Source: Eukaryota sp. TZLM1-RC
Taxonomy: Eukaryota; Protista; Metamonada: BaSk clade
DNA: 64,000 nt
Direction of reading: 5' to 3'
Assembly (NCBI GenBank): GCA_040285825.1
Contig: JAUPSS010000004.1
Span: forward strand, 2,150,550 to 2,214,549
Shown here one piece after another: positions 8,425-57,324 of the stretch (positions within the stretch are counted from its first letter, which is position 1; every line of letters starts with the position of its first letter). The position numbers and the translations under genes are program-made. The notes beneath the pieces were generated by a model. It saw only the letters and a program-made list of their open reading frames with translations, was not told the DNA's origin and did no database searches.

Positions 8425-9589
8425 TACATGAGAAGTTTTTAAGGTCTATAAATTTTTTTGTAAATGTAATTCACTTTAATGGAAAAAAGATGTACATAAA
8501 TTGTGAATAAAAATGATTAAATTTAATAAAGCCGGAACTACTAGTTTAACACCAGATCAGTTTCTTTTTTAATTGAACAATGATATGAAACACAACGGCA
8601 TTTTAAGAATAAATTTATGACAAATGTTCGATTGTAATTTCTACCCAGCAGTATTGTACCGATTTTTTGTGGCTTTTAATTCAAATGATCTCAACAATTA
8701 ATTGTCACAATATTAAATTCCAATATGGTAACTTAATAAGTTGACAAATCCTAGTAATTTCCCACGAATACAATCAGTCAATTTTGTACATACTTTTCTA
8801 AAGAGATTTATAAGAATCAAGTTTAAGAGAATGAAGAAATAGCCAAATTTTTCCACAGTCGAACGAAACAGTGGATCTTGGATTCATTAGAACAATTCTC
8901 CATAGATAATGTCTCTTAAAGGTGAAAACTTTTTATGAGAATCACAATCCGTGCCAGTAACTGTTTTAACTAGATTGGATTGGAATTTATTTGGAATTTC
9001 ACAAACACAAATCAGTTAAAGTAATGTTTTTCCACTATATCTTGATCTTTGGCTCCCCAATTCTTTTCTCTTTCGCACAAATCAACAACAGCTTTCTCAG
9101 ATTCTCAATCATTGCCAGAAATCATCTAATCTAAGTGACAGCAACATTTAAGAATCTGAAGGTAGGAAATTTTAATTTATAACTGTGTTAGTTTTTAAAT
9201 AACCAAAATATAGACACATTCATTTAAATTCGCCGGCCCTTGTATAGGTCATCACTAGTGAAGTCTATGTTATTACAAATGTATTAGACAAATTGTCGAC
9301 GTTACAGAAGCCAGGGACTTCGGAGAGTGATAAATTGGTTATGACGGAGTGTTGGTTATATAGATCTGTTGTTCAAGAAACAGTAATGATTTTGAACCAA
9401 TGAAGTATGTTTTTCAACGTTAATAAACAATCCTTTTTTTCCCTATATTTGTAAGTAATCTGGTTCAGTTTTTCAAAAAACTTTTTCCAAAATGATAAAT
9501 TATAAAAAGCATTGGAAAATGATTTTTGGGTTTATTGTTTTTATTTTGATTGAAATAAAAACTCTTTTGTGCATATTTCTATTATTTCA

Positions 9590-9846
9590 TACTGTGAAAT
9601 TCACTCCTGTTTTCAACTTCCTCAATGTCTACTCACAGACTGTAAGGGACATGTAGTATCATTTGACAAAGACAATCATAATCTTCATCAATGGGCTACC
9701 TCACTTAAATACACCTACTGCTTTCACAGAACATAGCCTCGCGACTTGATGTATCTAAGTGGATCTACCAAATGCTACTAAGGCATTTGTAGATCGCTCT
9801 CAAAAGTTTTTCAAAAAAATCAAAAATAAAATAAAAAACTCAAATA
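9590..9846 (-). ncRNA. Solo copy of the family-A Fanzor 3' structured tail (candidate omegaRNA locus without ORF)
   Basis: Reverse complement of the tails at about 14260-14511 and 54554-54768. Ends in GTGAATTTCACAG followed by TA. No Fanzor ORF is adjacent. Confidence 0.65.
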
Positions 9847-10040
9847 TTGAAATAGTCTTGTGAATAGATAATTTTAAATTTATATTTGTTGCAGAAAAAA
9901 TTACTAAAGTTAGTAATTGAATGACGTTAATTGAAAATTATTATTTGTCTCTGAAAAGGATCACAGAGAGTAAAGTATTGAACAAAAGTTTTCCGGTATC
10001 TTTTAGCCTATAAAATAAATCTTGTCTTTATTTAATAAAA

Positions 10041-10880
10041 ATGCATGACCATTTCACCAGATTCTCACCCCATTACACCACATCAACCAATGGTTCAAAG
10101 CTCTATGTCATTCCAGGAGACAACAATACTATAGCCGTTGATGATAATCTTGATCCGCTTCATTCAACACCCATACACCATAATTCATGCACACACATAT
10201 TTCTTGGAAATCACAACACCCGTTCTATCTTCCTTATCTCGTCAGACCAACCTTCCTCTCTTCCTTTGCATTTTGAGTCCCTGCGATCACTTCAAGAATC
10301 ACAGTCCACTGAGGTGTCCTCCATTTTGTCTCTTGCAAACTCTTTGCATCATTTCCACGTCTCACATAAATTTTGTGGAATCTGTGGTTCAAGAACTGAG
10401 CTTTCCTCATCAGGATGGTCACGTAAATGTCCTCATCACCCGAAAAACGAAATTTTTCCACGTCAGGACCCCTGTGTCATAACCCTAGTTCGCAACATTA
10501 CTAGTACCCATGTTCTATTAGCAAGAAATTCTAAATGGAAACTACCAAGATACTCAACTATTGCTGGTTTCATTGACATTGGGGAGGTTCCTGAAGATGC
10601 CGTAAGAAGGGAAGTAAAGGAAGAGGTCGGAGTCACCGTTGATGAAATTGAGTACATTTCATCCCAGTTTTGGCCTTTTCCTCGTTCGCTTATGCTTGGC
10701 TTCTTTTGCGTTGGAGATGATGACCAACCTATTGAACTTGTGGATGGAGAAATACAGCATGCAAGATGGTTTAGTAGGGATGAAGTGGAAAGAATGGTAG
10801 ATGCTGGGAAGGAAGAGGATCATGTTCCAGGTGTTGATACAATTGCCGGAACATTGATTAGGAAATGGGTTTTTGGTTGA
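10041..10880 (+). CDS. NudC-like NADH pyrophosphatase (NUDT12/13 family)
   Basis: FCGICG Zn motif, FPRQDP, Nudix box GFIDIGEVPEDAVRREVKEEVG and SQFWPFPRSLM. Confidence 0.93.
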   Translation: MHDHFTRFSPHYTTSTNGSKLYVIPGDNNTIAVDDNLDPLHSTPIHHNSCTHIFLGNHNTRSIFLISSDQPSSLPLHFESLRSLQESQSTEVSSILSLANSLHHFHVSHKFCGICGSRTELSSSGWSRKCPHHPKNEIFPRQDPCVITLVRNITSTHVLLARNSKWKLPRYSTIAGFIDIGEVPEDAVRREVKEEVGVTVDEIEYISSQFWPFPRSLMLGFFCVGDDDQPIELVDGEIQHARWFSRDEVERMVDAGKEEDHVPGVDTIAGTLIRKWVFG

Positions 10881-11688
10881 TATTTGATTTTGAGAATTCA
10901 TTTCTTTTTCATTAAAATAAATTAAATGAATTAATTAATTAATTTATTTTTTCGTATTTATAATATTCAATTTTTCTTGATTTTAAGCTTAAAATAAATT
11001 TTTTATGAAGAACTTTACCCTAAGTTTACTTATCAGCTTAACTGTAAATGTTTATTTCAAAGTTTCTTAAAGTTCTTGTGTGATCTCGAGTAAACTATCA
11101 AAGAATATGCCAGGACAAGATCTTGATCCTTTAAAAAGTCAAGCAAAACAAAATTATTCAATCAGCAGTAACTAAATTTATGTATCATTAATCAGTAAAG
11201 GAACAGCAAGACTCATAGTCGGACAAGATCACTTAGACAAGTTGATACTTCATTTAATTGATTTGTTTATTGAACAATTTGAAATATGAATGAAGTTTGT
11301 TTCTGAGTATTTATTATTGTAATTAATCAATTGGTTAAAAAGTCATTATGTCATTATTTTGTCATGACGTCATCTTTTAACTATGGAAATTCACTAAAAT
11401 TCATCGTTTACCTGATCAAGGAGTATTACCAAACTAAATTTTCACAAGTGATAGACATTTATAATGATGTTTTCAAACTAACTCGAGAGGAAGAAACGCG
11501 AAAACCTTTTTATGGAAGCAATGATAAGATTAGTAATCATTTCAAGGTAGATTAGATTAGCGTTTTTGTGGAAAACCTGTATTCCATTGATTTTAAATTT
11601 GATGTTCTGTATAATAATAATCTGTATAATAAAGTTCAAATAAACAACAAAAAACATCAACTATTTATTTACAAAATAACTTACTTTA

Positions 11689-12050
11689 TTACAGATTGTC
11701 TAAATGAACAGGGCTATCTTCACCAGTATTGAAAAGGGCTTCCAGCCCTCGTTCGTCTAGCTCAATGTTAACATTTTCCTTCGAGATGCCATTAGAAAGC
11801 TTCAAGCCAAGTAAAACGCTAGGGACAGAAGTGTTTTTGTTTGATGAATGACTAACAGTGTTGTTTAACTTCCAATCAGACCTTTCAAGAAACGTTTTCC
11901 TGGTATTATTACCGGATAAGCGAAAAGCAGGAGGTGTGTACATGGACTGCACCGGTTGAGGCGTCGGTGGGAGAGCAGCATAAGTTGCAGTTTGTGGAGG
12001 GCCCGTAGTGGGGTCATGAACTGAGGGAGTAATAGAAAGAAGTTGAAAGA
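11689..12050 (-). pseudogene. COMM-domain (COMMD10-like) 3' gene fragment carried as cargo
   Basis: DWKLNNTVSHSS...PSVLLGLKLSNG...VNIELDERGLEALF...LDNL*. The 5' part of the gene is absent on both sides of the element. Confidence 0.6.
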
Positions 12051-12251
12051 TTACAGGGGAGTCCTAAAGCTTGAAAGAGAAGTTAAGTGAGGGATATAAG
12101 AACCTAGTTTATGAAGTAAAGGGAAAGTGTGAGAATAGTGAAAACCTCCCGAAACCACGTTGAGGGTTAAACCTCCCAGAACAGGCAACCAGAAGTCAAA
12201 AATGGGGTGACAAGTGTAAAATTTGATAGATGAGCTCCTTATTCTCATTAC

Positions 12252-14208
12252 ATGTCAGACACCCCCTTTGTGTTACGTGTATTCACTCGGTCTTGTGCAC
12301 TTAACTTGTTGCTGACCCCTGCAACGGTGCAACAACTTCAGACTGACCTTCCTTTGGTCACCGAAATTTGTCATGAAGCTTCTTTATTACTTCAATCTTT
12401 TCTTCTAAAATTTCCGTTGGCATCTAGAGCTTTAGTGGAACAGGATGTATGGTATCTTTTTATGACCGTCATCACCACTGGTGCCTTTCGAAACCCATCC
12501 ACCTCTAAAGGTCAACGCCAATTACTCCATATCTTTTACAATGGATTTCTTCCAGAATGCCCACAAAACAGGTTTCTTGTCTCTTTGTGGAAAAATTCTT
12601 TGTTGCCTTATAGAAATTCATTCAATCTTTTTCTCAATGCTTGGCTGCAGTCTCAGAATTGAAATTTTATCAATAGACAAGGGTTTTCTCCTTACCTTGC
12701 TTGTCGGGCTCGTCAATTGGCGTCTAACGTGAAGACAAGTTTACCTAAAATTTGTCAATCCTGGACAAAAAACTTTATTCGTGCTCATTGTAGAGCTCTA
12801 GATAAAACAAATGTCCTTGACAATTATATTTTCTCACTTTTGCCAGACGAACCATTAGCCCAACCCGAGGAAGTAGTTGTTGATTCTGTTCTTGAACTCT
12901 ACATCAATTTCAATCTGAATAATTCAAGAGAAAGATTCTTTTTATTAAATGCATGTAAGTTTATCTTGAATCTCCTTCATTGATTTCCTACCACTGCCTC
13001 CCTACTGTCCTCACATGATAAAATCACTTTTTCATCAAAAGAAATTGGTGAGCTTTTTCTCTTCAATCTTAAAATTTCACAATACTTACTCACTTTCTAT
13101 TCTCATATGCATTGCTGGAAGAAATTTAGAATAATACCTTTAGCTTCTCATAAAGGTTCTAAATTTATTGAGGTACCTTCACAAATTTTCCACTCTGTGA
13201 AAAAATTTCCAATTATTGAAGGATCATCTTCCAAAACAAAGTTTATCAAAAATACATGTCTGAAACGAGTATTCAAACGATGTCCTTACCAAAAATTCAA
13301 TATCAACAGAAAAAATTTGAAAAATAGATTTAAAAAATTTTTTTATTGAAAACTAATAATAATGAACTGCTTTTGACCTTTAAAGGTAAAAATCATGACT
13401 GAGAAAACACAGATGAGCTGGATGAACCACCGAAAAAGAAAAGAAGATCAAAAAAAGAAATGAAAAGTGACCCTATTGCCAACAAAACAAGAGAAACACA
13501 GTTGAAGAGCACTAAAAAATGGCCCGTTGAAGACGTAGACATCCAGTCGAAATTTTACCTTAAAGGCCCCTTATTGGCGTTGATCTGGGACAATCCAGAT
13601 GATGTGGTTACTTCTTAAATGATTATCAATGTGGAGTTATCCCTTGTCCAACTGGCAGAAGATACATGACAGAACCTTCACCCAGTAAAGACTCTCCCAA
13701 CCAATATTTCATTCAAAATTTCAACCAATATTTGAACCATTGGAATTTGGTCAAGAGGAAAGTGTATTTCGAAAGTAAACGCCAGAAATGGAAAACAATT
13801 AAATTTGATCACCGCAGACGAAAAGAGAGACGGTTCAGTGAGAGTCTCAACAAATTTCAAAGGCTGGCTGGACATCCTGATGAACTCTATCTTGCTGTGG
13901 GTTTTGCTAATTTCCCTTCTCATTGCCGAAAAGTCAATGATTATGGATCAGCAAGGGCTTTCAGAAAATGGCTGTGTTATCAAAAGGACGTGAAGCACTT
14001 GTCAACCAGTGAATTCAATACAAGCAAACTGTCAAGTTGTTGCATGGCCGTGAATATTCAAGCAGGCTCATGGCAGATGCGTATTTGTACTGAGTGTCAA
14101 ATAGTATATGACAGAGATATATCCGCTGCAAAAAATATTCAAATTAAGAAGAAAACGGAATTGTGGCCGGAAAGATACATTTTCCCAGATGCTCTGTTGA
14201 GGAGATGA
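12252..14208 (+). pseudogene. Fanzor (TnpB-like RuvC nuclease) family A, disrupted ORF of about 650 codons
   Basis: RuvC-I IGVDLGQ near 13572-13592, RuvC-II SEFNTSKLSSCC, Zn finger CTEC, RuvC-III YDRDISAAKNI. Has internal stops and frameshifts. Confidence 0.88.
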
Positions 14209-14297
14209 AAAGGGAACGTGAGCATTCAGAAACAAATTTTGTTTGAAAAACTTAAATTTTATTTTGAGTTTTTTAATTTTGATTTTTTTTGAAAATC

Positions 14298-14539
14298 TTT
14301 TGAGACCGATCTACAAATGCCTTGGTAGCATTTTGTAGATCTACTTAGATACATCAAGTCGCGAGGCTTTGTTCTGTGAAAGCAGTAGGTGTATTTAAGT
14401 GAGGTAGCTCATTGATGAAGATCATGATTGTCTTTGTCAATTGACGCTACATGTCTCTTACAGCCTGTGAGTAGACATTGAGAAAGTTGAAAACAGGAGT
14501 GAATTTCGCAGGGGAATGCATAATAAGTGAAATTCACAG
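14298..14539 (+). ncRNA. Candidate omegaRNA scaffold of Fanzor A1
   Basis: Conserved in three copies. Hairpins at 14308-14341, 14451-14478 and a terminal 11-bp stem at 14499-14537. Confidence 0.7.
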
Positions 14540-14564
14540 TAAATTTGATGACATGTACATTTTG

Positions 14565-22043: not shown

Positions 22044-24050
22044 CTGAGAATTTCACCTCAAATGGATATTGAATAAATATCACCAAAACTGATTTAAACT
22101 TTTCAGCACCAAGAGTTAATATGCACTAAACACCTTGGAAATACGTTGATGAAAGCAGCTACTGCTGTCTCCTTAGACGTCTTACACGCCTTGGTCTTCG
22201 GAATTGCTCTGGTCTAGTACCAGTGAAGTACTCACTGCTTGCAATCTCCAGCTGATTTTTAGAGGCTGTGATGTCCCTAGACCAGTTGGTCTCACATCGA
22301 GGGCAATCGAACTTAGCGTTATTTACCCTTCCGTCATCATGATATATCTTTCTATGGAAGACTTTACAGCAATTCACTTTTGCTGAGTTCATAAACTCGT
22401 TCTCCACTTTCACGTTTTCAAAGTATTTTTGAATTTGTTTTAGAGATCTCTATCTGGGGGATTTCACAGTTTGACGAGAAGGTCCACCACAGCCATTACC
22501 GAACCAAACTGTACTGTTTCTTCTTTCAGACCAGATTTTGATTTTGTTGATAAAACTAGTTATTCTCTTTTGTCTTCGTATGAAAAAATCAAACTTATTT
22601 CTTCTAAGTTTTTTTCTTGCATTACGCTGCAGGTCTCCACACATAATTGAAGAATATTCAGGCCCTTCATCAGATTCAGAAACATAAGGTAAATTTATTT
22701 CAATCAGATACTCTTGACAGCTCTGAGCGGAATAAGTATTAGAAGTTGCTTGAGTGAGGGGAGGAGGGTGATTTGATTTTCGTTCCTTTGGGTTCAGCAG
22801 TATTCCAGAACCCCCATATACATTTGCAGAATTTCGGAAAGAACCAGTAATCCAACCACAAAGATTACTTCGGTTGGGATCAATGGCTACAAAAAACAAA
22901 TTTTAAACAACGATAATTGGGGTGTTCAAATTCTGGTAACCGTGACCTTCGCTGTGGATTTGCTTTTCTATGGACATTACTTTTTGTTTTCGCTACAGAG
23001 TTAGGAGAATCATAATTTCGAGACACGTCTCGACTCAAATTCTACTTTAGTCGGGTAATTATATGTTTTTCTTGCCTTTTGGGTGAAGTTGAACCGCAAA
23101 GAATCACCATTTGAAAAAATGGTACAGTCAATAAATTTAGATTGATTGAAGAACCCTCAAGGGTTGTTCAGAAGCTCTTTGCTTTCATTTAGCTTTGTAA
23201 AATAAGGTTCCAAACTGCAGAAACATAAACACCAACTGGATAAAGGTGAGAGAAAGTGCTTTTTCATGACTTCAGGCCAGTCATCTTCTAGAAAAGATAA
23301 AATATTCGGTCCTGACAAAAAGACTGTGGCTGTAATTTTTATATTTATGGTAAATCTATCATTTCTGATCGAAGAGTCCAACATACTTTGACCCCCCCCC
23401 CCCAATATAGGCATTGGATGTCATATTTAGCAAGTGGGTCAAAATATGTTGGTGCATTTCTTGATACCATTGTGAAATGGTATCATTCGGCCGAAGATCT
23501 TGAAGTACACAGTCGGCGTACTTTTTGGGACAAGGGCAGTTAAGACTCTGAGCACATCTCTTGAAAAAATTGTGTTTCCAAACAACAGGGCCGTCAGCCA
23601 ACAGCTGGCAAAAAGCTTCCCTCAGTTGAATGGCTCGACTGCCAAGCAGACTGGAATGGCACCAGAATCTACCACCGTCGGCTGATGTGGTTTCATTCAG
23701 TGGGCACCAAGGCCAAAAGTGTTGAACGAAATGTTGCAGCACTTGAAAAACCAGAATATGGTTCTCAAATGGCCGTCTTTGTTTGGGTTCTCTTTCACAA
23801 ACAAAGTCGAAACAGAAACTCCAGAACTGGCTTTGAGTAAGCCACAAAGAATGTTCTAGGTATTGAAGGACAAAAAGTCGTGCTAGGTGAGTAGCATGAG
23901 CTCCAATATTTGCGAGAATTTGGAACTGGCGTTCCATAGCTTCTCGTGCTTCTGAGCCAAAGAACCGGTTCACAGACGCTTCCACAGTTGTAGTTTGTAG
24001 AGCGTTTTTGAACACAGAAGGGAAACAGATAGAAATGATCAACAATTGGT
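22044..24050 (-). mobile_element. Fanzor family B element (disrupted ORF of about 630 codons plus about 115-nt tail)
   Basis: FVAIDPN (RuvC-I), VWFGNG, ENEFMNSAKVNCC (RuvC-II), CPRC and WSRDITASKN...GTRPEQFRR (RuvC-III). The tail ends in GGTGAAATTCTCAG at 22044. Confidence 0.87.
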
Positions 24051-35904: not shown

Positions 35905-37181
35905 TTCCACCTCAGACCACTGAGCTACCTGGGCATGCTTTCTGGAATATCCAATCAATTTACAGAATTTTAATCCAAATGAATCAAATTACCCGAAAAA
36001 TTCGGCAGCGCTACTGGGTGGAAATTTAGAAAAATTCCAACATCAATACTGGAAATGGATAATGTGGACAGGTAAAAGTGTTTTCCATCAGAAAGATTAC
36101 TGTTTTAATTTTTCTATTAGGACTGATGGTGTAAGTTGCTCATTACATCTCATAAGAAAAGATAAAGCTGGGAAGAGTCGCCTTAAGAAGCCCGAACAAG
36201 GTGAAAAAGGTCCATACATGACTGATTTTCTACCGGATGAGCTGATAAAAAATAGCTTCACAGTAATTGACCCTGGCATTAGGGACCAATTGATGGCTGG
36301 GAAGCGAAAATTAAATTGCCCAAATCCCAACATGTTAACTGAACCACATTCAACACCAACAGATGCAAGACAAGAATGGGACGAATGGCGTCATTAAGAA
36401 AACAAAGGAAGAAATACAGGTTTTATTAACAGAATGGAAAAAAACCAAAAAAACAAAACAGTAGATTCTAGACTTCAGGCCAAAACAAAATCCTCCTCCT
36501 GCAAATGAAAACAAGAAAACAAAACTAAAGGAATATACTTTCAAGAGGCTCACTGCTTCCCAAAGGAGAAGAGAAACTCTGAACAAAGAACATCAAAAAT
36601 TCTAAAAGGATGGCAAAGAATCATGGATTTATCAAAACAAAACTGTAAAGGAGTGGAAAGAAGAATTAAAACAATTTTCAAAAAAAACTCTAGATCATGA
36701 AGCATTCCTAGCAAAAAACAACTCTTCTCTCCATGTTGGAGCTTTTTACTTTAACAAAGAATTAAGAGTCAGGAAACTGCGAAGATTCATGGCCACAGAG
36801 AGGTTTGAAGCAAAATGGATGAATTAATTTGAAAATAAGTTTGGAGGTCCAGAAGATAACATTGTAGTGATCTGTGATTGGAAGCAAACCAATTTTAAAC
36901 ATCAAGCACCTACAGAGAATGTTGGTTATCAAAAGATGTTTAAAAAACGTAACTTCCGTCTATTGTTGCTGGACGAATATAGAACTAGTTGTCGATGTCA
37001 TGTATGTGTACTCCAGGGAAAAGAAGGCGAAAATGTGAAGAAACATCGAGTACCTAACCCAAGAGCTTACATGAGAGCAAAGACTCCAACAGTCCTTAGA
37101 CATGGAACACTCACTTGCAAGTTTCGAAAAGATCATCTTGATTCATTTCATCTTCATATGACATTTTTGTGCTATTAGCCG
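35905..37181 (+). mobile_element. Fanzor family C, copy 1 (decayed, RuvC-III region deleted)
   Basis: FNFSIRTDGVSCS, VIDPG (RuvC-I), CDW, LDEYRTSCRCHVC (RuvC-II) and RHGTLTCK. Confidence 0.85.
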
Positions 37182-50699: not shown

Positions 50700-51060
50700 T
50701 TGTTGTTGTAAAGCAACAACATTGGAAATGAAGGAGCTTGTGCTTAGCTCATGCTGTAGAGTCTAATGCACTGCTTTCTACATTGAACCCCTTTTGGTGT
50801 GTACAGCAACATTAGTAATGAAGGTGCTTATGCACTTGCTCATGCTCGTGAATCCAATGTAACTCTTTCCGTTTTTGATCCTTTGGCTAACAGCATCGGT
50901 ATTGCAGGAGCTTGTGTGTTTGCTCTTGCTTAATCGCTTATGTTGTTGGGCTCAAGATTCAATGAGTCAGAGTGGAATTTGATTCAAGAGCACGAGCAAG
51001 TGCATAAGCACCTTCATTGCTTTTATTATTCCAACAATCAATCAATCTGGGATATGCTGT
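50700..51060. pseudogene. RNI/NLRC3-type LRR gene fragments in both orientations
   Basis: NNIGNEGACA and NISNEGAYALAHARESN on plus, NEGAYALARALESNSTLTH on minus. Confidence 0.7.
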
Positions 51061-51544: not shown

Positions 51545-51913
51545 AATGACAAATCCAAAAACACTTTGAAAATATCAAAGTGGGGACGAGTTTATGACAT
51601 CAGCAAAAGTGACTTTCTGTAAGGTCTTTCACGATAAAAGATATATCACGATGGCGGAAGGGTAAATTACGCTAAGTTCGATTGCCCACGATGTCAGACC
51701 AAATGTCTATGGACATCTCAGGCCCCAGCAACCAGCTGGTGATTGTAATTAGTGAATATTTCACTGGTACTAGGCCAGAACCAGTCCGAAGGCCAGGACG
51801 TGCAGGACATCTAAGGAGATAGTAGTAGCTGTTTCCATCAACATATTTTCAAAGTGTTCAGTGTATACTAACCCTTGCTGCTGAGAATGTACATCAGGAT
51901 TTTTGAATACTAT
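51545..51913 (+). mobile_element. Fanzor family B 3' remnant (its last ~25 bp resume at 54810-54834)
   Basis: Homologous to the reverse complement of about 22075-22440. The terminal ATCAATTTGATGCGAAATTCTCAG lies beyond the family-A insertion. Confidence 0.85.
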
Positions 51914-51926
51914 TATATTGTAATTG

Positions 51927-52363
51927 GGGGTAGTTGTTGCCTAATTGGTAGATTTGTTCAGACCAAATCCATAGCAATTACCACAAGCAGTGAGTGCCAA
52001 TGTATGATGAACACCTACACTACAAGAAACAATGTTAGAGAAGAAGGGTAACTGGAAATTCTTTCTACCAGTAGCATGAGGAGGAAAACATCGGGAGAGA
52101 ACACCAGGTGTTGGAGATGAGAATAAAGAAACAGAAGGTGCAACAGAGCCAATAAGGTTGATTCGTTTTGTGCGAGACCAGAGAATTGAGTTTCCTTTAG
52201 ATATGTAGCGAATTCTGTGAGATAGTACAGATAAGGCAAGAAAATCGTGAAGAGGGAGGAAGGATACACCGCCAAATCTATCCTCAAAACCAACAAAGAA
52301 ACGTTCTTTAGACAAAGAAGTATCGTGGACTAATCTGTTGATGATGCTGAGAGCGTCTTTCAT
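51927..52363 (-). pseudogene. MJ1316-like RNA-repair domain plus RCC1-repeat 5' gene fragment carried as cargo
   Basis: IINRLVHD...FFVGFEDRFGG...HRIRYI.KG..LWSR..RINL, then SVGVHHTLALTACGNCYGFGLN. A frameshift precedes YQLG, and the gene is cut off at the direct repeat. Confidence 0.72.
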
Positions 52364-52568
52364 GAGTTACATAGAGTTGAAATTCCAGAAACTTTTACAA
52401 AGGATACCTAGTTCATGAACCTAGTTTATGAAGTAAAGGGAAAGTGTGGGAATAGTGAAAACCTCCCGAAACCACGTTGAGGGTTAAACCTCCCAGAACA
52501 GGCAACCAGAAGTCAAAAATGGGGTGACAAGTGTAAAATTTGATAGATGAGCTCCTTATTCTCATTAC

Positions 52569-54515
52569 ATGTCAGACACCCCCTTTGTGTTACGTGTATT
52601 CACTCGGTCTTGTGCACTTAACTTGTTGCTGACCCCTGCAACGGTGCAACAACTTCAGACTGACCTTCCTTTGGTCACCGAGATTTGTCATGAAGCTTCT
52701 TTATTACTTCAATCTTTTCTTCTAAATTTTCCGTTGGCATCTAGAGCTTTAGTGGAACAGGATGTATGGTATCTGTTTATGACCGTCATCACCACTGGTG
52801 CCTTTCCAAACCCATCCACCTCTAAAGGTCAACGCCAATTACTTCATATCTTTTACAGTGGACTTCTTCCTGAATGTCCACAAAACAGGTTTCTTGTTTC
52901 TTCATGGGAATATTCTTTGTTGCCTTATAGAAATTCATTCAATCTTTTTCTCAATGCTTGGCTGCAGTCTCAGAATTGTAATTTTATCAATAGAAAAGGG
53001 TTTTCTCCTTACCTTGCTTGTCGGGCTCGTCAATTGGCGTCTAACGCGAAGACAAGTTTACCTAAAATTTGTCAATCCTGGACAAAAAACTTTATTCGTG
53101 CTCATTGTAGAGCTCTAGATAAAACAAATGTCTTTGCAAATAATATTCTCTCACTTTTGCCAGACGAACCATTAGCCCAACCCGAGGAAGTAGTAGTTGA
53201 TTCTGTTCTTGAATACTTCATCAATTTCAATCTGAATAATTCAAGAGAAAAATTCTTCTTATTAAATGCATGTAAGTTTATCTTGAATCTCCTTCAAAGA
53301 TTTCCTACCATTGCCTCCCTACTGTCCTCACATAATAAAATCACCTTTTCATCAAAGGAAATTGGTGAGCTTTTTCTCTTCAATCTTAAAATTTCACAAT
53401 ACTTACTCACTTTCTTTTCTCATATGCATTGCTGGAAGAAATTTAGAATAATACCTTTAGCTTCTCATAAAGGTTCTAAATTTATTGAGGTACCTTCACA
53501 AATTTTCCACTCTGTGAAAAAATTTCCAATTATTGAAGGATCATCTTCCAAAACAAAGTTTAGCAAAAATACATGTCTGAAACGAATATTCAAACAATGT
53601 CCTTACCAAAAATTCAATATCAACAGAAAAAGTTTGAAAAATAGATTTAACAAAATTTTATTGAAAACTAATGGTAATGAACTGCTTTTGACCTTTGAAG
53701 GTAAAAATAATGACTCAGAAAACACAGATGAGCTGGATGAACCACCGAAAAAGAAAAGAAGATCAAAAAATGAAATGAAAAGTGACCCTAATGCCAACAA
53801 AACCAGAGAAACACAGTTGAAGGGTACTAAAAAAATGCCCCGTCGAAGACGTAGACATCCAGTCGAAATAATGTCTGAAAGGCCCCTTATTGGTGTTGAT
53901 CTGGGCCAATCTAGATTATGTGGTTACTTCTTAGATGATTATCAATGTGGAGTTATCCCTTGTCCAACTGGCAGGAGATACATGACAAAACCTTCACCCA
54001 GTAAACACTCTCCCAACCAATATTTCCGTTCAAAATTTCAACCAATATTTGAACCATTGAAATTTGTTCAGGAGGAAGGTGTATTCGGAAAGTAATCGCC
54101 AGAAATGGAAAATAATTAACTTTGATACCCGCAGACGAAAAGAGAGACGGTTCTGAGAGAGTCTCAAAAAATTCCAAGGCTGGCTGGACATCCTGAAAAA
54201 CTCTATCTTGCTGTTAGTTCTGCTAATTTCCCTTCTCATTGCCGAAAAGTCAATCGATATTGATCAGCAAGGGCTTTCAGAAAATGGCTGTGTTATCAAA
54301 AGGACGTGAAGCACTTGTCAACCAGTGAATTCAATACAAGCAAACTGTCAAGTTGTTGCATGTCCGAGAATATTCAAACAGGCTCATGGCACATGCGTAT
54401 TTGTACTGAGTGTCAAATAGTATATGACAAAGATATTTCCGCTCCAAAAGTATTCAAATTAAGAAGAAAGCGGAATTGTGGCCGGAAAGATACATTTGCC
54501 CAGATGCTCTGTTGA
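52569..54515 (+). pseudogene. Fanzor family A ORF, copy 2 (open for about 490 codons, then frameshifted)
   Basis: LIGVDLGQSR, SEFNTSKLSSCC, CTEC and YDKDISA. Confidence 0.9.
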
Positions 54516-54553
54516 GAAGATGAATGGGGAACCTGAGCATATAGAAACATAAA

Positions 54554-54796
54554 CTTTTGAGACCGATCTACAAATGCCCTAGTAGCATTTGGTAGATCCA
54601 CTTAGATACATCAAGTCGCGAGGCTTTGTTCTGTGAAAACAGTAGGTGTATTTAAGTGAGGTAGCCCATTGATGAAGATCATGATTGTCTTTGTCAAATG
54701 ATGCTACATGTCTCTTACAGCCTGTGAGTAGACACTGAGGGAGTTGAAAACAGGAGTGAATTTCACAGGAAAATGCAAGATAAGTGAAATTCACAG
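54554..54796 (+). ncRNA. Candidate omegaRNA scaffold of Fanzor A2
   Basis: Same hairpins as A1, ending in GTGAAATTCACAG. Confidence 0.7.
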
Positions 54797-54895
54797 TATA
54801 TTGTAATTGAATCAATTTGATGCGAAATTCTCAGAAGACTCAACCTCTCTCCATCAAAGCAACTTATTCCATTGTTTTAGACACTTTCTCTAAAA

Positions 54896-55504
54896 ATGGG
54901 AAAAATACGCAAGGTCCCAGCACCCAAACTCAAGAGGATGATTAATCCCAAGGACAGTAGAATGTTTGCTCACTTTTAATCTTATCCCAGTGTCAAGAAT
55001 CAAAAGGAATCAGCAAAGAAACCTTCACAACCAAACGAAGTAGCAATACGTCATGTTCCACAGGTGTCCTCTTCTTTCTTCTTCCAACACAACTCTGCTC
55101 TTGGTCCTCCTTATCATGTCATTTGTGATACCAACTTTATCCACTTTTCCGTCAAGAACAAGCTTACCATTGATCAAGCCCTCATTGACTGCCTTCACGC
55201 AAAATGCATACCGCTTGTCACCGACTGCATTATCGCTGAACTTGAAAAACTTGGTCAAAAGTATCGTGTGGCTCTCCGTATTGCCAAGTCCTCCATGTTT
55301 CAAAGACTTCCCTGTACTCATAAAGGAACATATGCCGATGATTGTATATGTGATCGAGCGACTGCACACCCCATATACCTTGTGGGAACATGTGATCGAG
55401 ATTTGAAGAGAAGAATTCGCAAGATCCCAGGTATTCCAATATTGTGTATCAAGGCAAGAAAGTATACAGTGGAAAGGTTACCAGAAGCTTTAAATGCACC
55501 ATAG
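54896..55504 (+). CDS. FCF1: rRNA-processing PIN nuclease Fcf1/Utp24, 27-nt intron at 54964-54990
   Basis: FFQHNSALGPPYHVICDTNFI, CTHKGTYADDC and TCDRDLKRRIRKIPG. Confidence 0.96.
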
Positions 55505-56203: not shown

Positions 56204-57198
56204 CGTCTAGCAGCACAAAAATGTCAAATAGTAGTAACCCGTTGAGATTTCTGGAATATGAAGATGAAATGAATCTTTTCAAAACTCGGGCACTTTCATT
56301 TCCTTCAGGATACTGATCAACATGAATCATATAAGAGCAGCATTGACATTACGATTCCATAGACATCCACACATCTTGCAAGTGAGTTATCCATGTCTAA
56401 GGACCGTTGGAGTCTTTGCTCTCCTGTAAGCTCTTGGGCTAGGTACTCGATGTTTCTTTACATTTTCGCCTTCTTTTTTCTCGAGTACACATGCATGACA
56501 TCAACAACTTGTTCTATATTCATCCAGCAGCACTAGACGGAAGTTACGTTTTTTGAACATCTTTCGATAACCAACATTCTTTGTAGGTGCATGATGTTTA
56601 AAATTGGTTTGCTTCCAATCACCCATCACTACAATGTTATCTTCTGGACCTCCAAACTTATTTTCAAATTCATCCATCCATTTTGCTTCAAATCTCTCTG
56701 TGGCCATGAATCTTCGCAGCTTCATGACTCTTAATTCTGTATTACAGTAAAAAGCTCCAACATGGAGCGAAGAGTTGTTTTTTGCCTAGTTTAGGAATTC
56801 TTCATGATTTAGAGTTTTTTTTGAAAATTGTTTTAATTCTTCTTTCCACTCCTTTACAGTTTTGTTTTCATAAATCCATGATTCTTTGCCATTCTTATAG
56901 TATTTTTGATGGTCTTTGTTCAGAGTTTCTCTTCTCCTTTGAGAAGCAGTGAGCCTTCTGAAAGTATATTCCTTTAGTTTTGTTTTCTTGTTTTCATTTG
57001 CAGGAGGAGGATTTTGTTTTGGCCTGAAGTCTAGAATCTACTGTTTTGTCTTTTTGTTTTTTTCCATTCTGTTAATAAAACCTCTATTTCTTCCTTTGTT
57101 TTCTTAATGACCCCATTCGTCCCATTCTTATCTTGCATCTGTTGGTGTTGAGTTTGGTTCAGTTAACTTGTTGGGATTTGGGTAATTTAATTTTCGTT
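56204..57198 (-). mobile_element. Fanzor family C, copy 2 (3' half, decayed)
   Basis: Homologous to 36303-37181. VMGDW, LDEYRTS and CKMCGCLWNRNVNAA. Confidence 0.87.
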
Positions 57199-57324
57199 TA
57201 CAGATTCAACTACAGAGAAGGTAATTATTGAGTGAAAGTGTAAAGAAATCATTTTCCAATTTCATTCAATAAAATTGTTTTTTCTTACAATAAAGGTCCT
57301 CATCTTAATGTAAACTTTGTCAGC

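Follow-up and report, generated by a model that had tools for sequence, protein, structure and literature searches.

A Fanzor-bearing TIR transposon of a metamonad with TA-flanked full-length copies and left-truncated copies inside longer target duplications

Introduction

The closest described systems are CRe-1, CRe-2, and CRe-3 of Chlamydomonas reinhardtii, which are non-autonomous Helitron2 transposons bearing Fanzor1 (Bao & Jurka 2013, PMC3627910). Their 3′ ends are intact, 5′ truncation is frequent, and extra captured 5′ sequence occurs occasionally. Target site duplications (TSDs) of 7–19 bp directly follow a T-rich target motif in truncated copies only, and in none of the copies reaching the consensus 5′ end (PMC3627910). 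This signature was present in 70% of Fanzor-bearing CRe-1 copies compared to 1 of 200 copies of the Fanzor-less Helitron-1N1, which uses the same target; Bao & Jurka did not decide whether the variable TSDs are due to Fanzor (PMC3627910). Their cause was still given as unknown in later work, where cleavage by HUH and Fanzor during integration was put forward tentatively (Craig 2023, PMC10288648). MCi-2 of Mucor circinelloides likewise carries Fanzor1 and combines a constant 3′ part with 5′ arms that differ between subfamilies and with TSDs of 11–12 bp (PMC3627910).

A different type of element is Spu-1 of Spizellomyces punctatus, which carries SpuFz1. It is a transposase-less Fanzor1 element bounded by inverted repeats (IRs) of 30 nt, with ghost copies, in which conserved bases upstream of the left IR form the TAM (CATA, i.e., CA plus TA) and the omegaRNA overlaps the right IR (Saito 2023, PMC10432273). 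In bacteria, TnpB of IS605 and IS607 elements acts in restorative homing, i.e., an RNA-guided cut of the empty site and gene conversion after scarless excision (PMC13565253). The role of Fanzor in its hosts is still inferred from bacterial TnpB, and according to a recent review, it is unclear what DDE cut-and-paste elements gain from an OMEGA nuclease (PMC13565253). Finally, Pack-TIRs and Pack-MULEs are elements with terminal inverted repeats (TIRs) that contain host gene fragments, acquired via template switching and microhomology and then amplified (Tan 2021, PMC8277862).

Here, we compare these systems with a Fanzor family from Eukaryota sp. TZLM1-RC, which corresponds to Skoliomonas litria. 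The window, i.e., the whole stretch of DNA that was analyzed, comprises 64,000 nt of contig JAUPSS010000004.1 in assembly GCA_040285825.1, to which it was assigned through an intact BBS5 gene, and includes three copies of this family A, named A1, A2, and A3.

Results

Sample

The family A sample consists of 15 copies, which comprise A1, A2, and A3 and those from 11 further loci (prefix L). These loci were chosen via annotated open reading frames and represent a family of at least 100 copies; two of the 15 copies, L008 among them, come from the isolate GEM-RC1. The search for further copies of the A2 13-mer covered 513 kb of sequence.

A2 Entered the Tail of a Family-B Fanzor as a Single Piece

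The A2 insertion and its target comprise the following features:

51549–51913, plus strand: family-B Fanzor remnant B2, left part (C-terminal coding piece and 3′ tail), target of A2, 82% identical to B1
51911–51915, plus strand: target or TAM-like motif TAT/TA (consensus TNT/TA; the slash marks the junction)
51914–51926, plus strand: left copy of the 13-bp duplication, the last 3 nt of which (TTG) are microhomologous with the arm
51927–52416, no strand assigned: inner 490 bp of the inherited left arm alpha, the "cargo" of a preliminary description of this locus
51941–52363, minus strand: host-like gene fragment of 140 codons (MJ1316 domain and RCC1-like piece), divergent from the Fanzor gene
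52406–52431, plus strand: 13-bp tandem repeat, joining point of the alternative arms alpha and beta to the core
52569–54523, plus strand: Fanzor1-type gene, broken in A2 by 1-nt indels at 54023, 54168, and 54444; an intact copy of 651 aa is found in L002
54551–54796, plus strand: candidate omegaRNA scaffold with right end CACAG; terminal hairpin pairing 54756–54768 with 54784–54796
54797–54809, plus strand: right copy of the 13-bp duplication, made up of TA and the 11 nt with which the guide presumably starts
54810–54834, plus strand: displaced 3′ end of B2

The preliminary description had reported a 13-bp duplication flanking 51927–54796, and this is borne out: the 13-mer TATATTGTAATTG was found at just these two sites, with no further copy in the 513 kb, and a match like this would arise by chance within 3 kb with a probability of ~2e-4. 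The interval entered B2 as a single piece. Its excision restores collinearity with B1 and with a family-B copy in L012 on another contig, and positions 54811–54834 match B1 at 21 of 24 positions; B1 excepted, no site elsewhere in the window matches this 24-nt tail at 19 or more positions. The rejoined site is 9 nt longer around the 13-mer than three other B copies, so that the split target supports one insertion and the rejoining of the family-B tail claimed earlier, but not to the exact base. Family B is a second Fanzor family, and A2 therefore landed in the 3′ tail of another Fanzor; tblastn with the Fanzors P0076 and P0078 matched B1 strongly and B2 weakly. Neither poly(A) nor a transposase was found in the A2 unit.

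The Protein Resembles Fanzor1 and Is Followed by a Candidate omegaRNA

The Fanzor of family A is represented by 82 proteins within one 90% cluster. Relatives are present in GEM-RC1 and TZLM3-RCL, and one distant match is a Logan contig. RuvC motifs I–III with the zinc finger (D ... TS-x-x-C4 ... RD) were identified, PF07282 scored above its cut-off, and the residues E, T, S, C, C, and D were invariant in an alignment of 10 sequences. The intact copy retains D444, E590, and the aspartate of the C-terminal RD. Its RuvC-II is rearranged: GSANF occupies the canonical position (N553), and the invariant E590 follows ~37 residues on in SEFNTS, the rule for rearranged RuvC-II being an alternative glutamate ~45 residues on. 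In a profile search, no solved structure other than SpuFz matched over the entire RuvC region, and its similarity is remote (E 0.006). Foldseek returned TnpB, Cas12f, and Fanzors, and SpuFz had the best query TM-score (0.37) with a weak model of the C-terminal part (pLDDT 62), usable in part. Judged by these motifs and matches, the family A protein is likely a Fanzor1. Sequencing errors may account for some of the 1-nt indels that break the A2 gene.

Conservation between isolates is far higher in the 250 nt before the right end, which fold into stems and a terminal hairpin, than in the coding region. The fold of the candidate omegaRNA is conserved across copies of TZLM1-RC and GEM-RC1, including three pairs with two-sided change.

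Full-Length Copies Are Bounded by TIRs and Duplicate 2 bp of the Target

Intact left ends were identified in 7 of the 15 copies (L002, L003a, L004, L007, L010, L011, and L008 of GEM-RC1), with TA or TT directly at the TIR, and intact right ends in 14 of 15. The exception, L002, is clipped by 2–3 nt at the right, which leaves six copies scorable at both ends. Full-length copies begin TA/CTGTGGTTGAATTT on the left and end GAAATTCACAG/TA on the right; all seven have imperfect TIRs (TA/CTGTG...CACAG/TA) and a 2-bp TSD. In TZLM1-RC, the TIRs are limited to 5 bp and a sub-terminal match, and the 11-bp TIR of L008 is perfect. The earlier statement that the element lacks TIRs is thereby overturned. 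The TSD is TA in L004, L007, L010, L011, and L008. In L003a and L006, it reads TT, shifted by one base (leftwards in L003a). The motif 5′ of the left junction, for which the preliminary description had called, could be derived as TNT/TA, which applies to 7 of 7 TA-type junctions, and both GEM-RC1 sites read TGA/TA. The right flanks hold no mirror of this motif, i.e., it is one-sided.

The TA TSD and the TIRs both agree with a non-autonomous IS630/Tc1/mariner element; an element with a cognate DD(E/D) transposase and family A ends was not found in the loci examined. Assignment to Helitron or Helitron2 was rejected based on the ends CTGTG...CACAG, the 2-bp TSD, and the absence of Helitron end features. 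The poly(A) or repeat tail expected before the TSD of a LINE retrocopy is also absent, with CACAG directly against the target in every copy. Family A is a non-autonomous TA-duplicating TIR DNA transposon with a probable Fanzor1 gene, a candidate omegaRNA at the right end, and a left arm composed of host gene pieces. It is probably transposed in trans by a TA-duplicating DDE transposase of the IS630/Tc1 type.

The Left Arm of A2 Is Shared by Copies on Other Contigs

The 490-bp piece of A2 had been taken for host DNA freshly captured together with the Fanzor. It is 97.8% identical to positions 9083–9578 of L004 on another contig, where the shared sequence extends to ~1,380 bp upstream of the core, and it is common to L002, L003, L004, L006, L007, L010, and L011. 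L002, L003a, L007, L010, and L011 carry arm alpha with internal deletions or an insertion and start at the identical base. The full arm alpha measures ~1.38 kb, and the 52416/52417 junction is not the left end of the element. In other copies, the left boundary was placed at about −1,380 (full length), −1,140, or −350. As the arms of both A2 and A1 are common to copies on other contigs, the host-like DNA is inherited and was not captured at these insertions. Nor is there a 490-bp length ruler, as had been proposed; with boundaries between ~350 and ~1,380 bp, the similarity of 490 and 495 bp in A2 and A1 is a coincidence.

Arm alpha is a mosaic of a C-terminal piece of a TCP-1 chaperonin (Cpn60_TCP1, E 5.6e-17) and the MJ1316/RCC1-like piece, for which a Pfam search with the L006 copy gave MJ1316 (E 1.4e-10) and a weak WD40_RLD match. 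Pieces of arm alpha, in whole or in part, occur in eight copies, i.e., host gene fragments lie inside the TIRs of a multicopy element as in Pack-TIRs. In L005, a third left neighbor was identified, an open reading frame of 452 codons encoding a coiled coil, which is either arm or flank. Since fragments of host genes make up the mosaic arms, shuffling of gene pieces is real at the family level; this part of the earlier proposal stands, and the A2 event itself involved no capture.

Long Duplications at Left-Truncated Copies

Longer duplications of 7–13 bp were identified at copies with a truncated left side and clean junctions, which applies to A2, L006, L009, and A1. They begin at the target TA or TT after the upstream motif, as in full-length copies. 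The preliminary description had expected distant duplications at every copy; they were present in these four, and intact left ends showed TA or TT alone. L006 is truncated ~1,140 bp from the core and has a 13-bp duplication (p ~7e-4) and 32 nt of AT-rich filler resembling the flank. L009 stops ~24 nt short of the left end with a weak 7-bp duplication; this 7-mer overlaps element sequence and may be due to chance. The 11-bp duplication of A1 comes with a short tandem scar, and this copy is probably left-truncated, as we assume. No duplication above chance was found for L003b, L005, L012, A3, and B1. L003b, L005, L012, and A3 lack a left end, and in L003b and L012, other repeats directly adjoin the left side. 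Four duplications among 15 copies correspond to a Fisher p-value of 0.05–0.30, depending on the counting of four unresolved copies, and the evidence is carried by the single matches and where they lie, not by these small counts.

A1, A3, and a Mosaic Shared by A1 and A2

The other family A features of the window are:

9592–9844, minus strand: A3, a tail-only ("ghost"-like) copy ending at the inner repeat, then TA; no duplication found
11594–11604, plus strand: left 11-bp duplication of A1, with TTT just before
11605–12099, no strand assigned: left arm beta of A1 with a COMM-domain gene piece (11692–12063, minus strand; COMM E 1.7e-08)
12100–14539, plus strand: A1 core with broken Fanzor and omegaRNA tail, 94.6% identical to A2
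14540–14550, plus strand: right 11-bp duplication of A1

The right end of A1 is CACAG/TA as in A2, and its 11-bp duplication (p ~0.005) has its left copy 495 bp upstream of the core. The fixed right end and the 11- and 13-bp duplications previously noted for A1 and A2 were thus both recovered. Arm beta is likewise found elsewhere: 11749–12153 is common to L012 on another contig (93% over 405 bp). A split target was looked for at A1 and gave no support for its empty site: the repeat on the right is not carried on in the left flank. A1 and A2 share 22 private substitutions, all within the first 600 bp of the core, and carry different arms, each common to copies without this patch. Such a mosaic would fit template switching, with a polishing error as the alternative.

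Discussion

The presence of right-flank bases on the left implies either that a pristine site was broken downstream of TA or that a free 3′ end at TA was extended. Gap repair after excision should not be able to place such bases there, and an offset break in a pristine allele should. We lean towards the view that the A2-type scar arose when Fanzor1 cut the empty allele and one-sided repair was aborted. The omegaRNA of a new copy would take its guide from the right flank, and the TAM would be the TNTTA of the left junction, by analogy with other Fanzor1s. The RNP would then cut the still-empty sister chromatid or homologue ~11–17 nt downstream of TA. The right-hand broken end, which has long homology and is flush with the filled allele, could invade it and copy leftwards via the guide bases and CACAG. 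Complete repair would yield an ordinary full-length copy with TA alone duplicated. Aborted synthesis would instead be end-joined, with microhomology or filler, to the left-hand end, on which TA and everything as far as the cut would be retained. This would leave a copy truncated on the left and enclosed by a duplication of the guide start; in A2, synthesis would have ended after 490 bp of the arm. Such copying from the right, aborting short of the left end, would explain why truncation is polar, why the duplications start at TA and how long they are, as well as the microhomology and the filler. The preliminary description had already named a Fanzor cut within the guide match followed by one-sided copying past the left end; the cut and the one-sided copying remain the best-supported mechanism, and the copying would have stopped short of that end.

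The anatomy and junctions of family A are read directly from the copies, and from these we infer the cut, the role of the TAM, and the repair route. Beyond TA, the duplications measure 11, 11, 9, and 5 nt. For SpuFz1 and GtFz1, published cuts in the non-target strand lie behind nt 14–17, counted from the TAM (PMC10432273). As the duplications are shorter than these cuts, trimming of 3–8 nt or more, or a nearer cut, has to be assumed. An 8-bp match 28 bp outside the intact left end of L004 (p ~0.001) counts against the model of a homing scar.

The main rival that remains is a one-ended integration by the transposase, and retroposition by a LINE is a lesser one. One-ended integration would join the right end at TA, extend the free target 3′ end by a few bases through strand displacement, and join it to a degraded left end, with Fanzor uninvolved. 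Bao & Jurka favored one-ended transposition for CRe-1/2/3 (PMC3627910); here, it would explain why the duplications start at the TA and motif of the transposase, as well as the microhomology and filler, and the imperfect left TIR of arm alpha could bias failure to the left. We nevertheless consider it rather unlikely. It predicts truncation at either end, and right truncation beyond 2–3 nt occurs in none of 15 copies; L009 is left-truncated despite the perfect 11-bp TIR in its sister L008; and Helitron2 ends in Chlamydomonas give the same polarity, hardly ever in Fanzor-less relatives. Retroposition in trans would have a LINE reverse transcriptase copy the element transcript by target-primed reverse transcription, resulting in 5′ truncation and TSDs of 7–20 bp. 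5′ truncation, variable TSDs, microhomology, and filler are hallmarks of LINEs, and such hallmarks were seen, as were RVT_1 genes in several of the fetched loci. However, there is no poly(A) or other tail, no donor guide was carried over, CACAG of every copy lies directly on target TA, and the targets share the motif of the full-length copies with a 2-bp TSD. This route would also need a transcript that begins as much as 1.3 kb before the Fanzor ATG and crosses a divergent gene piece, and introns are present in the Cre copies, which together make it improbable.

In the preliminary description, each move was thought to capture ~490 bp of host DNA past the left end, by a ruler or by copying beyond it; insertion at ectopic sites resembling the guide was considered along with this model. 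The unrelated arms of A1 and A2 (495 and 490 bp) gave rise to this idea, and three types of arm do join the core within ~50 bp; since both arms are common to copies on other contigs and arm lengths range from ~350 to 1,380 bp, we regard it as barely tenable. Guided ectopic retargeting was rejected because the right flanks of 12 copies resemble each other at chance level (4.70 vs. 4.68 matches of 15). An artefact of assembly or polishing, or chance repeats in AT-rich DNA, appears very unlikely. The Skoliomonas litria assembly is an early Nanopore assembly, polished with short reads and 55% repetitive (PMC11316075), and the single-base frameshifts and the patch shared by A1 and A2 could be effects of polishing. 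By contrast, the unique 13-mers (p 2e-4 and 7e-4), the split target, and the recurrence on other contigs and in the separate assembly of a second isolate speak against this explanation.

The preliminary description did not recognize the pattern as described; in fact, Bao & Jurka 2013 (PMC3627910) report it in CRe-1/2/3 and MCi-2. New here is that the known signature recurs in a TIR/TA element without HUH chemistry in sight, together with a specific repair model, and Fanzor is thereby left as the shared factor. Searches of the literature on Fanzor and TnpB TSDs, cuts, and homing, with most subscription journals outside their scope, returned no statement of an abortive-homing reading of truncation plus duplication. 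With somewhat less assurance than for A2 itself, we suggest that scars of polar truncation plus duplication may be footprints of Fanzor homing in eukaryotes regardless of transposase class, i.e., for Helitron2 in Chlamydomonas and for TIR/TA elements here. Their lengths would map the cut in vivo, and break-and-copy would swap host-gene arms, with Fanzor driving the shuffling. Such scars would offer a route to reading TAM and cut distance from genomes, and family A, being young and high in copy number, with full-length copies carrying a 2-bp TSD and truncated copies carrying long duplications, makes the cause of variable TSDs directly testable.

Regarding the known systems, family A resembles CRe-1/2/3 in its intact right ends, left truncation, occasional extra sequence on the left, and long duplications that lie right behind the target motif at truncated copies and are lacking in full-length ones. 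It differs from them in having TIRs and a 2-bp TA TSD instead of the ATIR and hairpins of Helitron2, in its left arm, which is an inherited mosaic of host genes, and in its host, a metamonad. With MCi-2, it shares the constant right part, the different left arms, and long duplications (11–12 bp in MCi-2); however, the TSDs of MCi-2 start with ATAATT and flank presumed complete copies without TIRs, whereas full-length copies of family A have TIRs and a 2-bp TSD. Like Spu-1, family A is transposase-less, with a one-sided motif at the left flank, a candidate omegaRNA at the right end, and a ghost-like copy; Spu-1 has IRs of 30 nt and no host-gene arm, and no long duplications were found in the sections consulted on it (PMC10432273). 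The homing shown for TnpB in bacteria (PMC13565253) is the process proposed here for family A, a eukaryotic element presumably of the DDE type. The arms make the element work like a Pack-TIR; in contrast to Pack-TIRs, which have no RNA-guided nuclease and a TSD length fixed by the transposase, family A carries Fanzor.

Target sites and flanks of family-A copies

Among family-A copies at other loci, TT is duplicated in place of TA at L003:8773-8774 and L006:8643-8644. This TT lies one base to the left within the same TATTA motif, and its duplication points to a transposase cut in a shifted register. At a further locus (L004:8145-8187), where the left TIR is intact, an 8-bp match to the right flank was detected 28 bp outwards from that TIR (p ~0.001), which could reflect copying beyond the element end with filler. 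Short tandem duplications were also observed in the right flanks just past the element end (L005:11804-11843; L003:530-567); end joining may have left these as scars in the guide region.

Core, arms, and the A3–A1 bracket

Arm genes, located in the host-like DNA left of the family-A core, start divergently ~45-55 bp from the core boundary (window 52363; L005:9804), hinting at a putative two-way promoter at the left edge of the core. The left part of the core further contains a private substitution patch, restricted to this part and common to A1 and A2 (window 12113-12700 and 52430-53020), two copies 40 kb apart. Local conversion, a template switch, or a polishing artefact may each account for it.

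Furthermore, a NUDIX gene (10041-10880) is framed by the inverted, tail-only copy A3 and the A1 right end (window 9592-14539), and this bracket has TIR-like ends. It would form a ready-made composite element, showing no sign of having moved, and offers a possible route by which new arms could arise.

Family B and its surroundings

The window contains a second Fanzor family, related to query proteins P0076/P0078, and a further repeat pair:

22044-23994 (-) and 51549-54834, family B
36302-37121 and 56375-57199, inverted repeat pair (826 bp, 93%)

Upstream of family-B copy B2, the two halves of a 53-bp inverted repeat are separated by a 102-nt spacer (window 50814-51021). A host gene, apparently similar to Fcf1/Utp24 as judged from its translation, starts 62 bp past the B2 right end (window 54897-55503). 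A2 is inserted inside the family-B tail, ~37 nt before the family-B end, and the right end of family B resembles that of family A.
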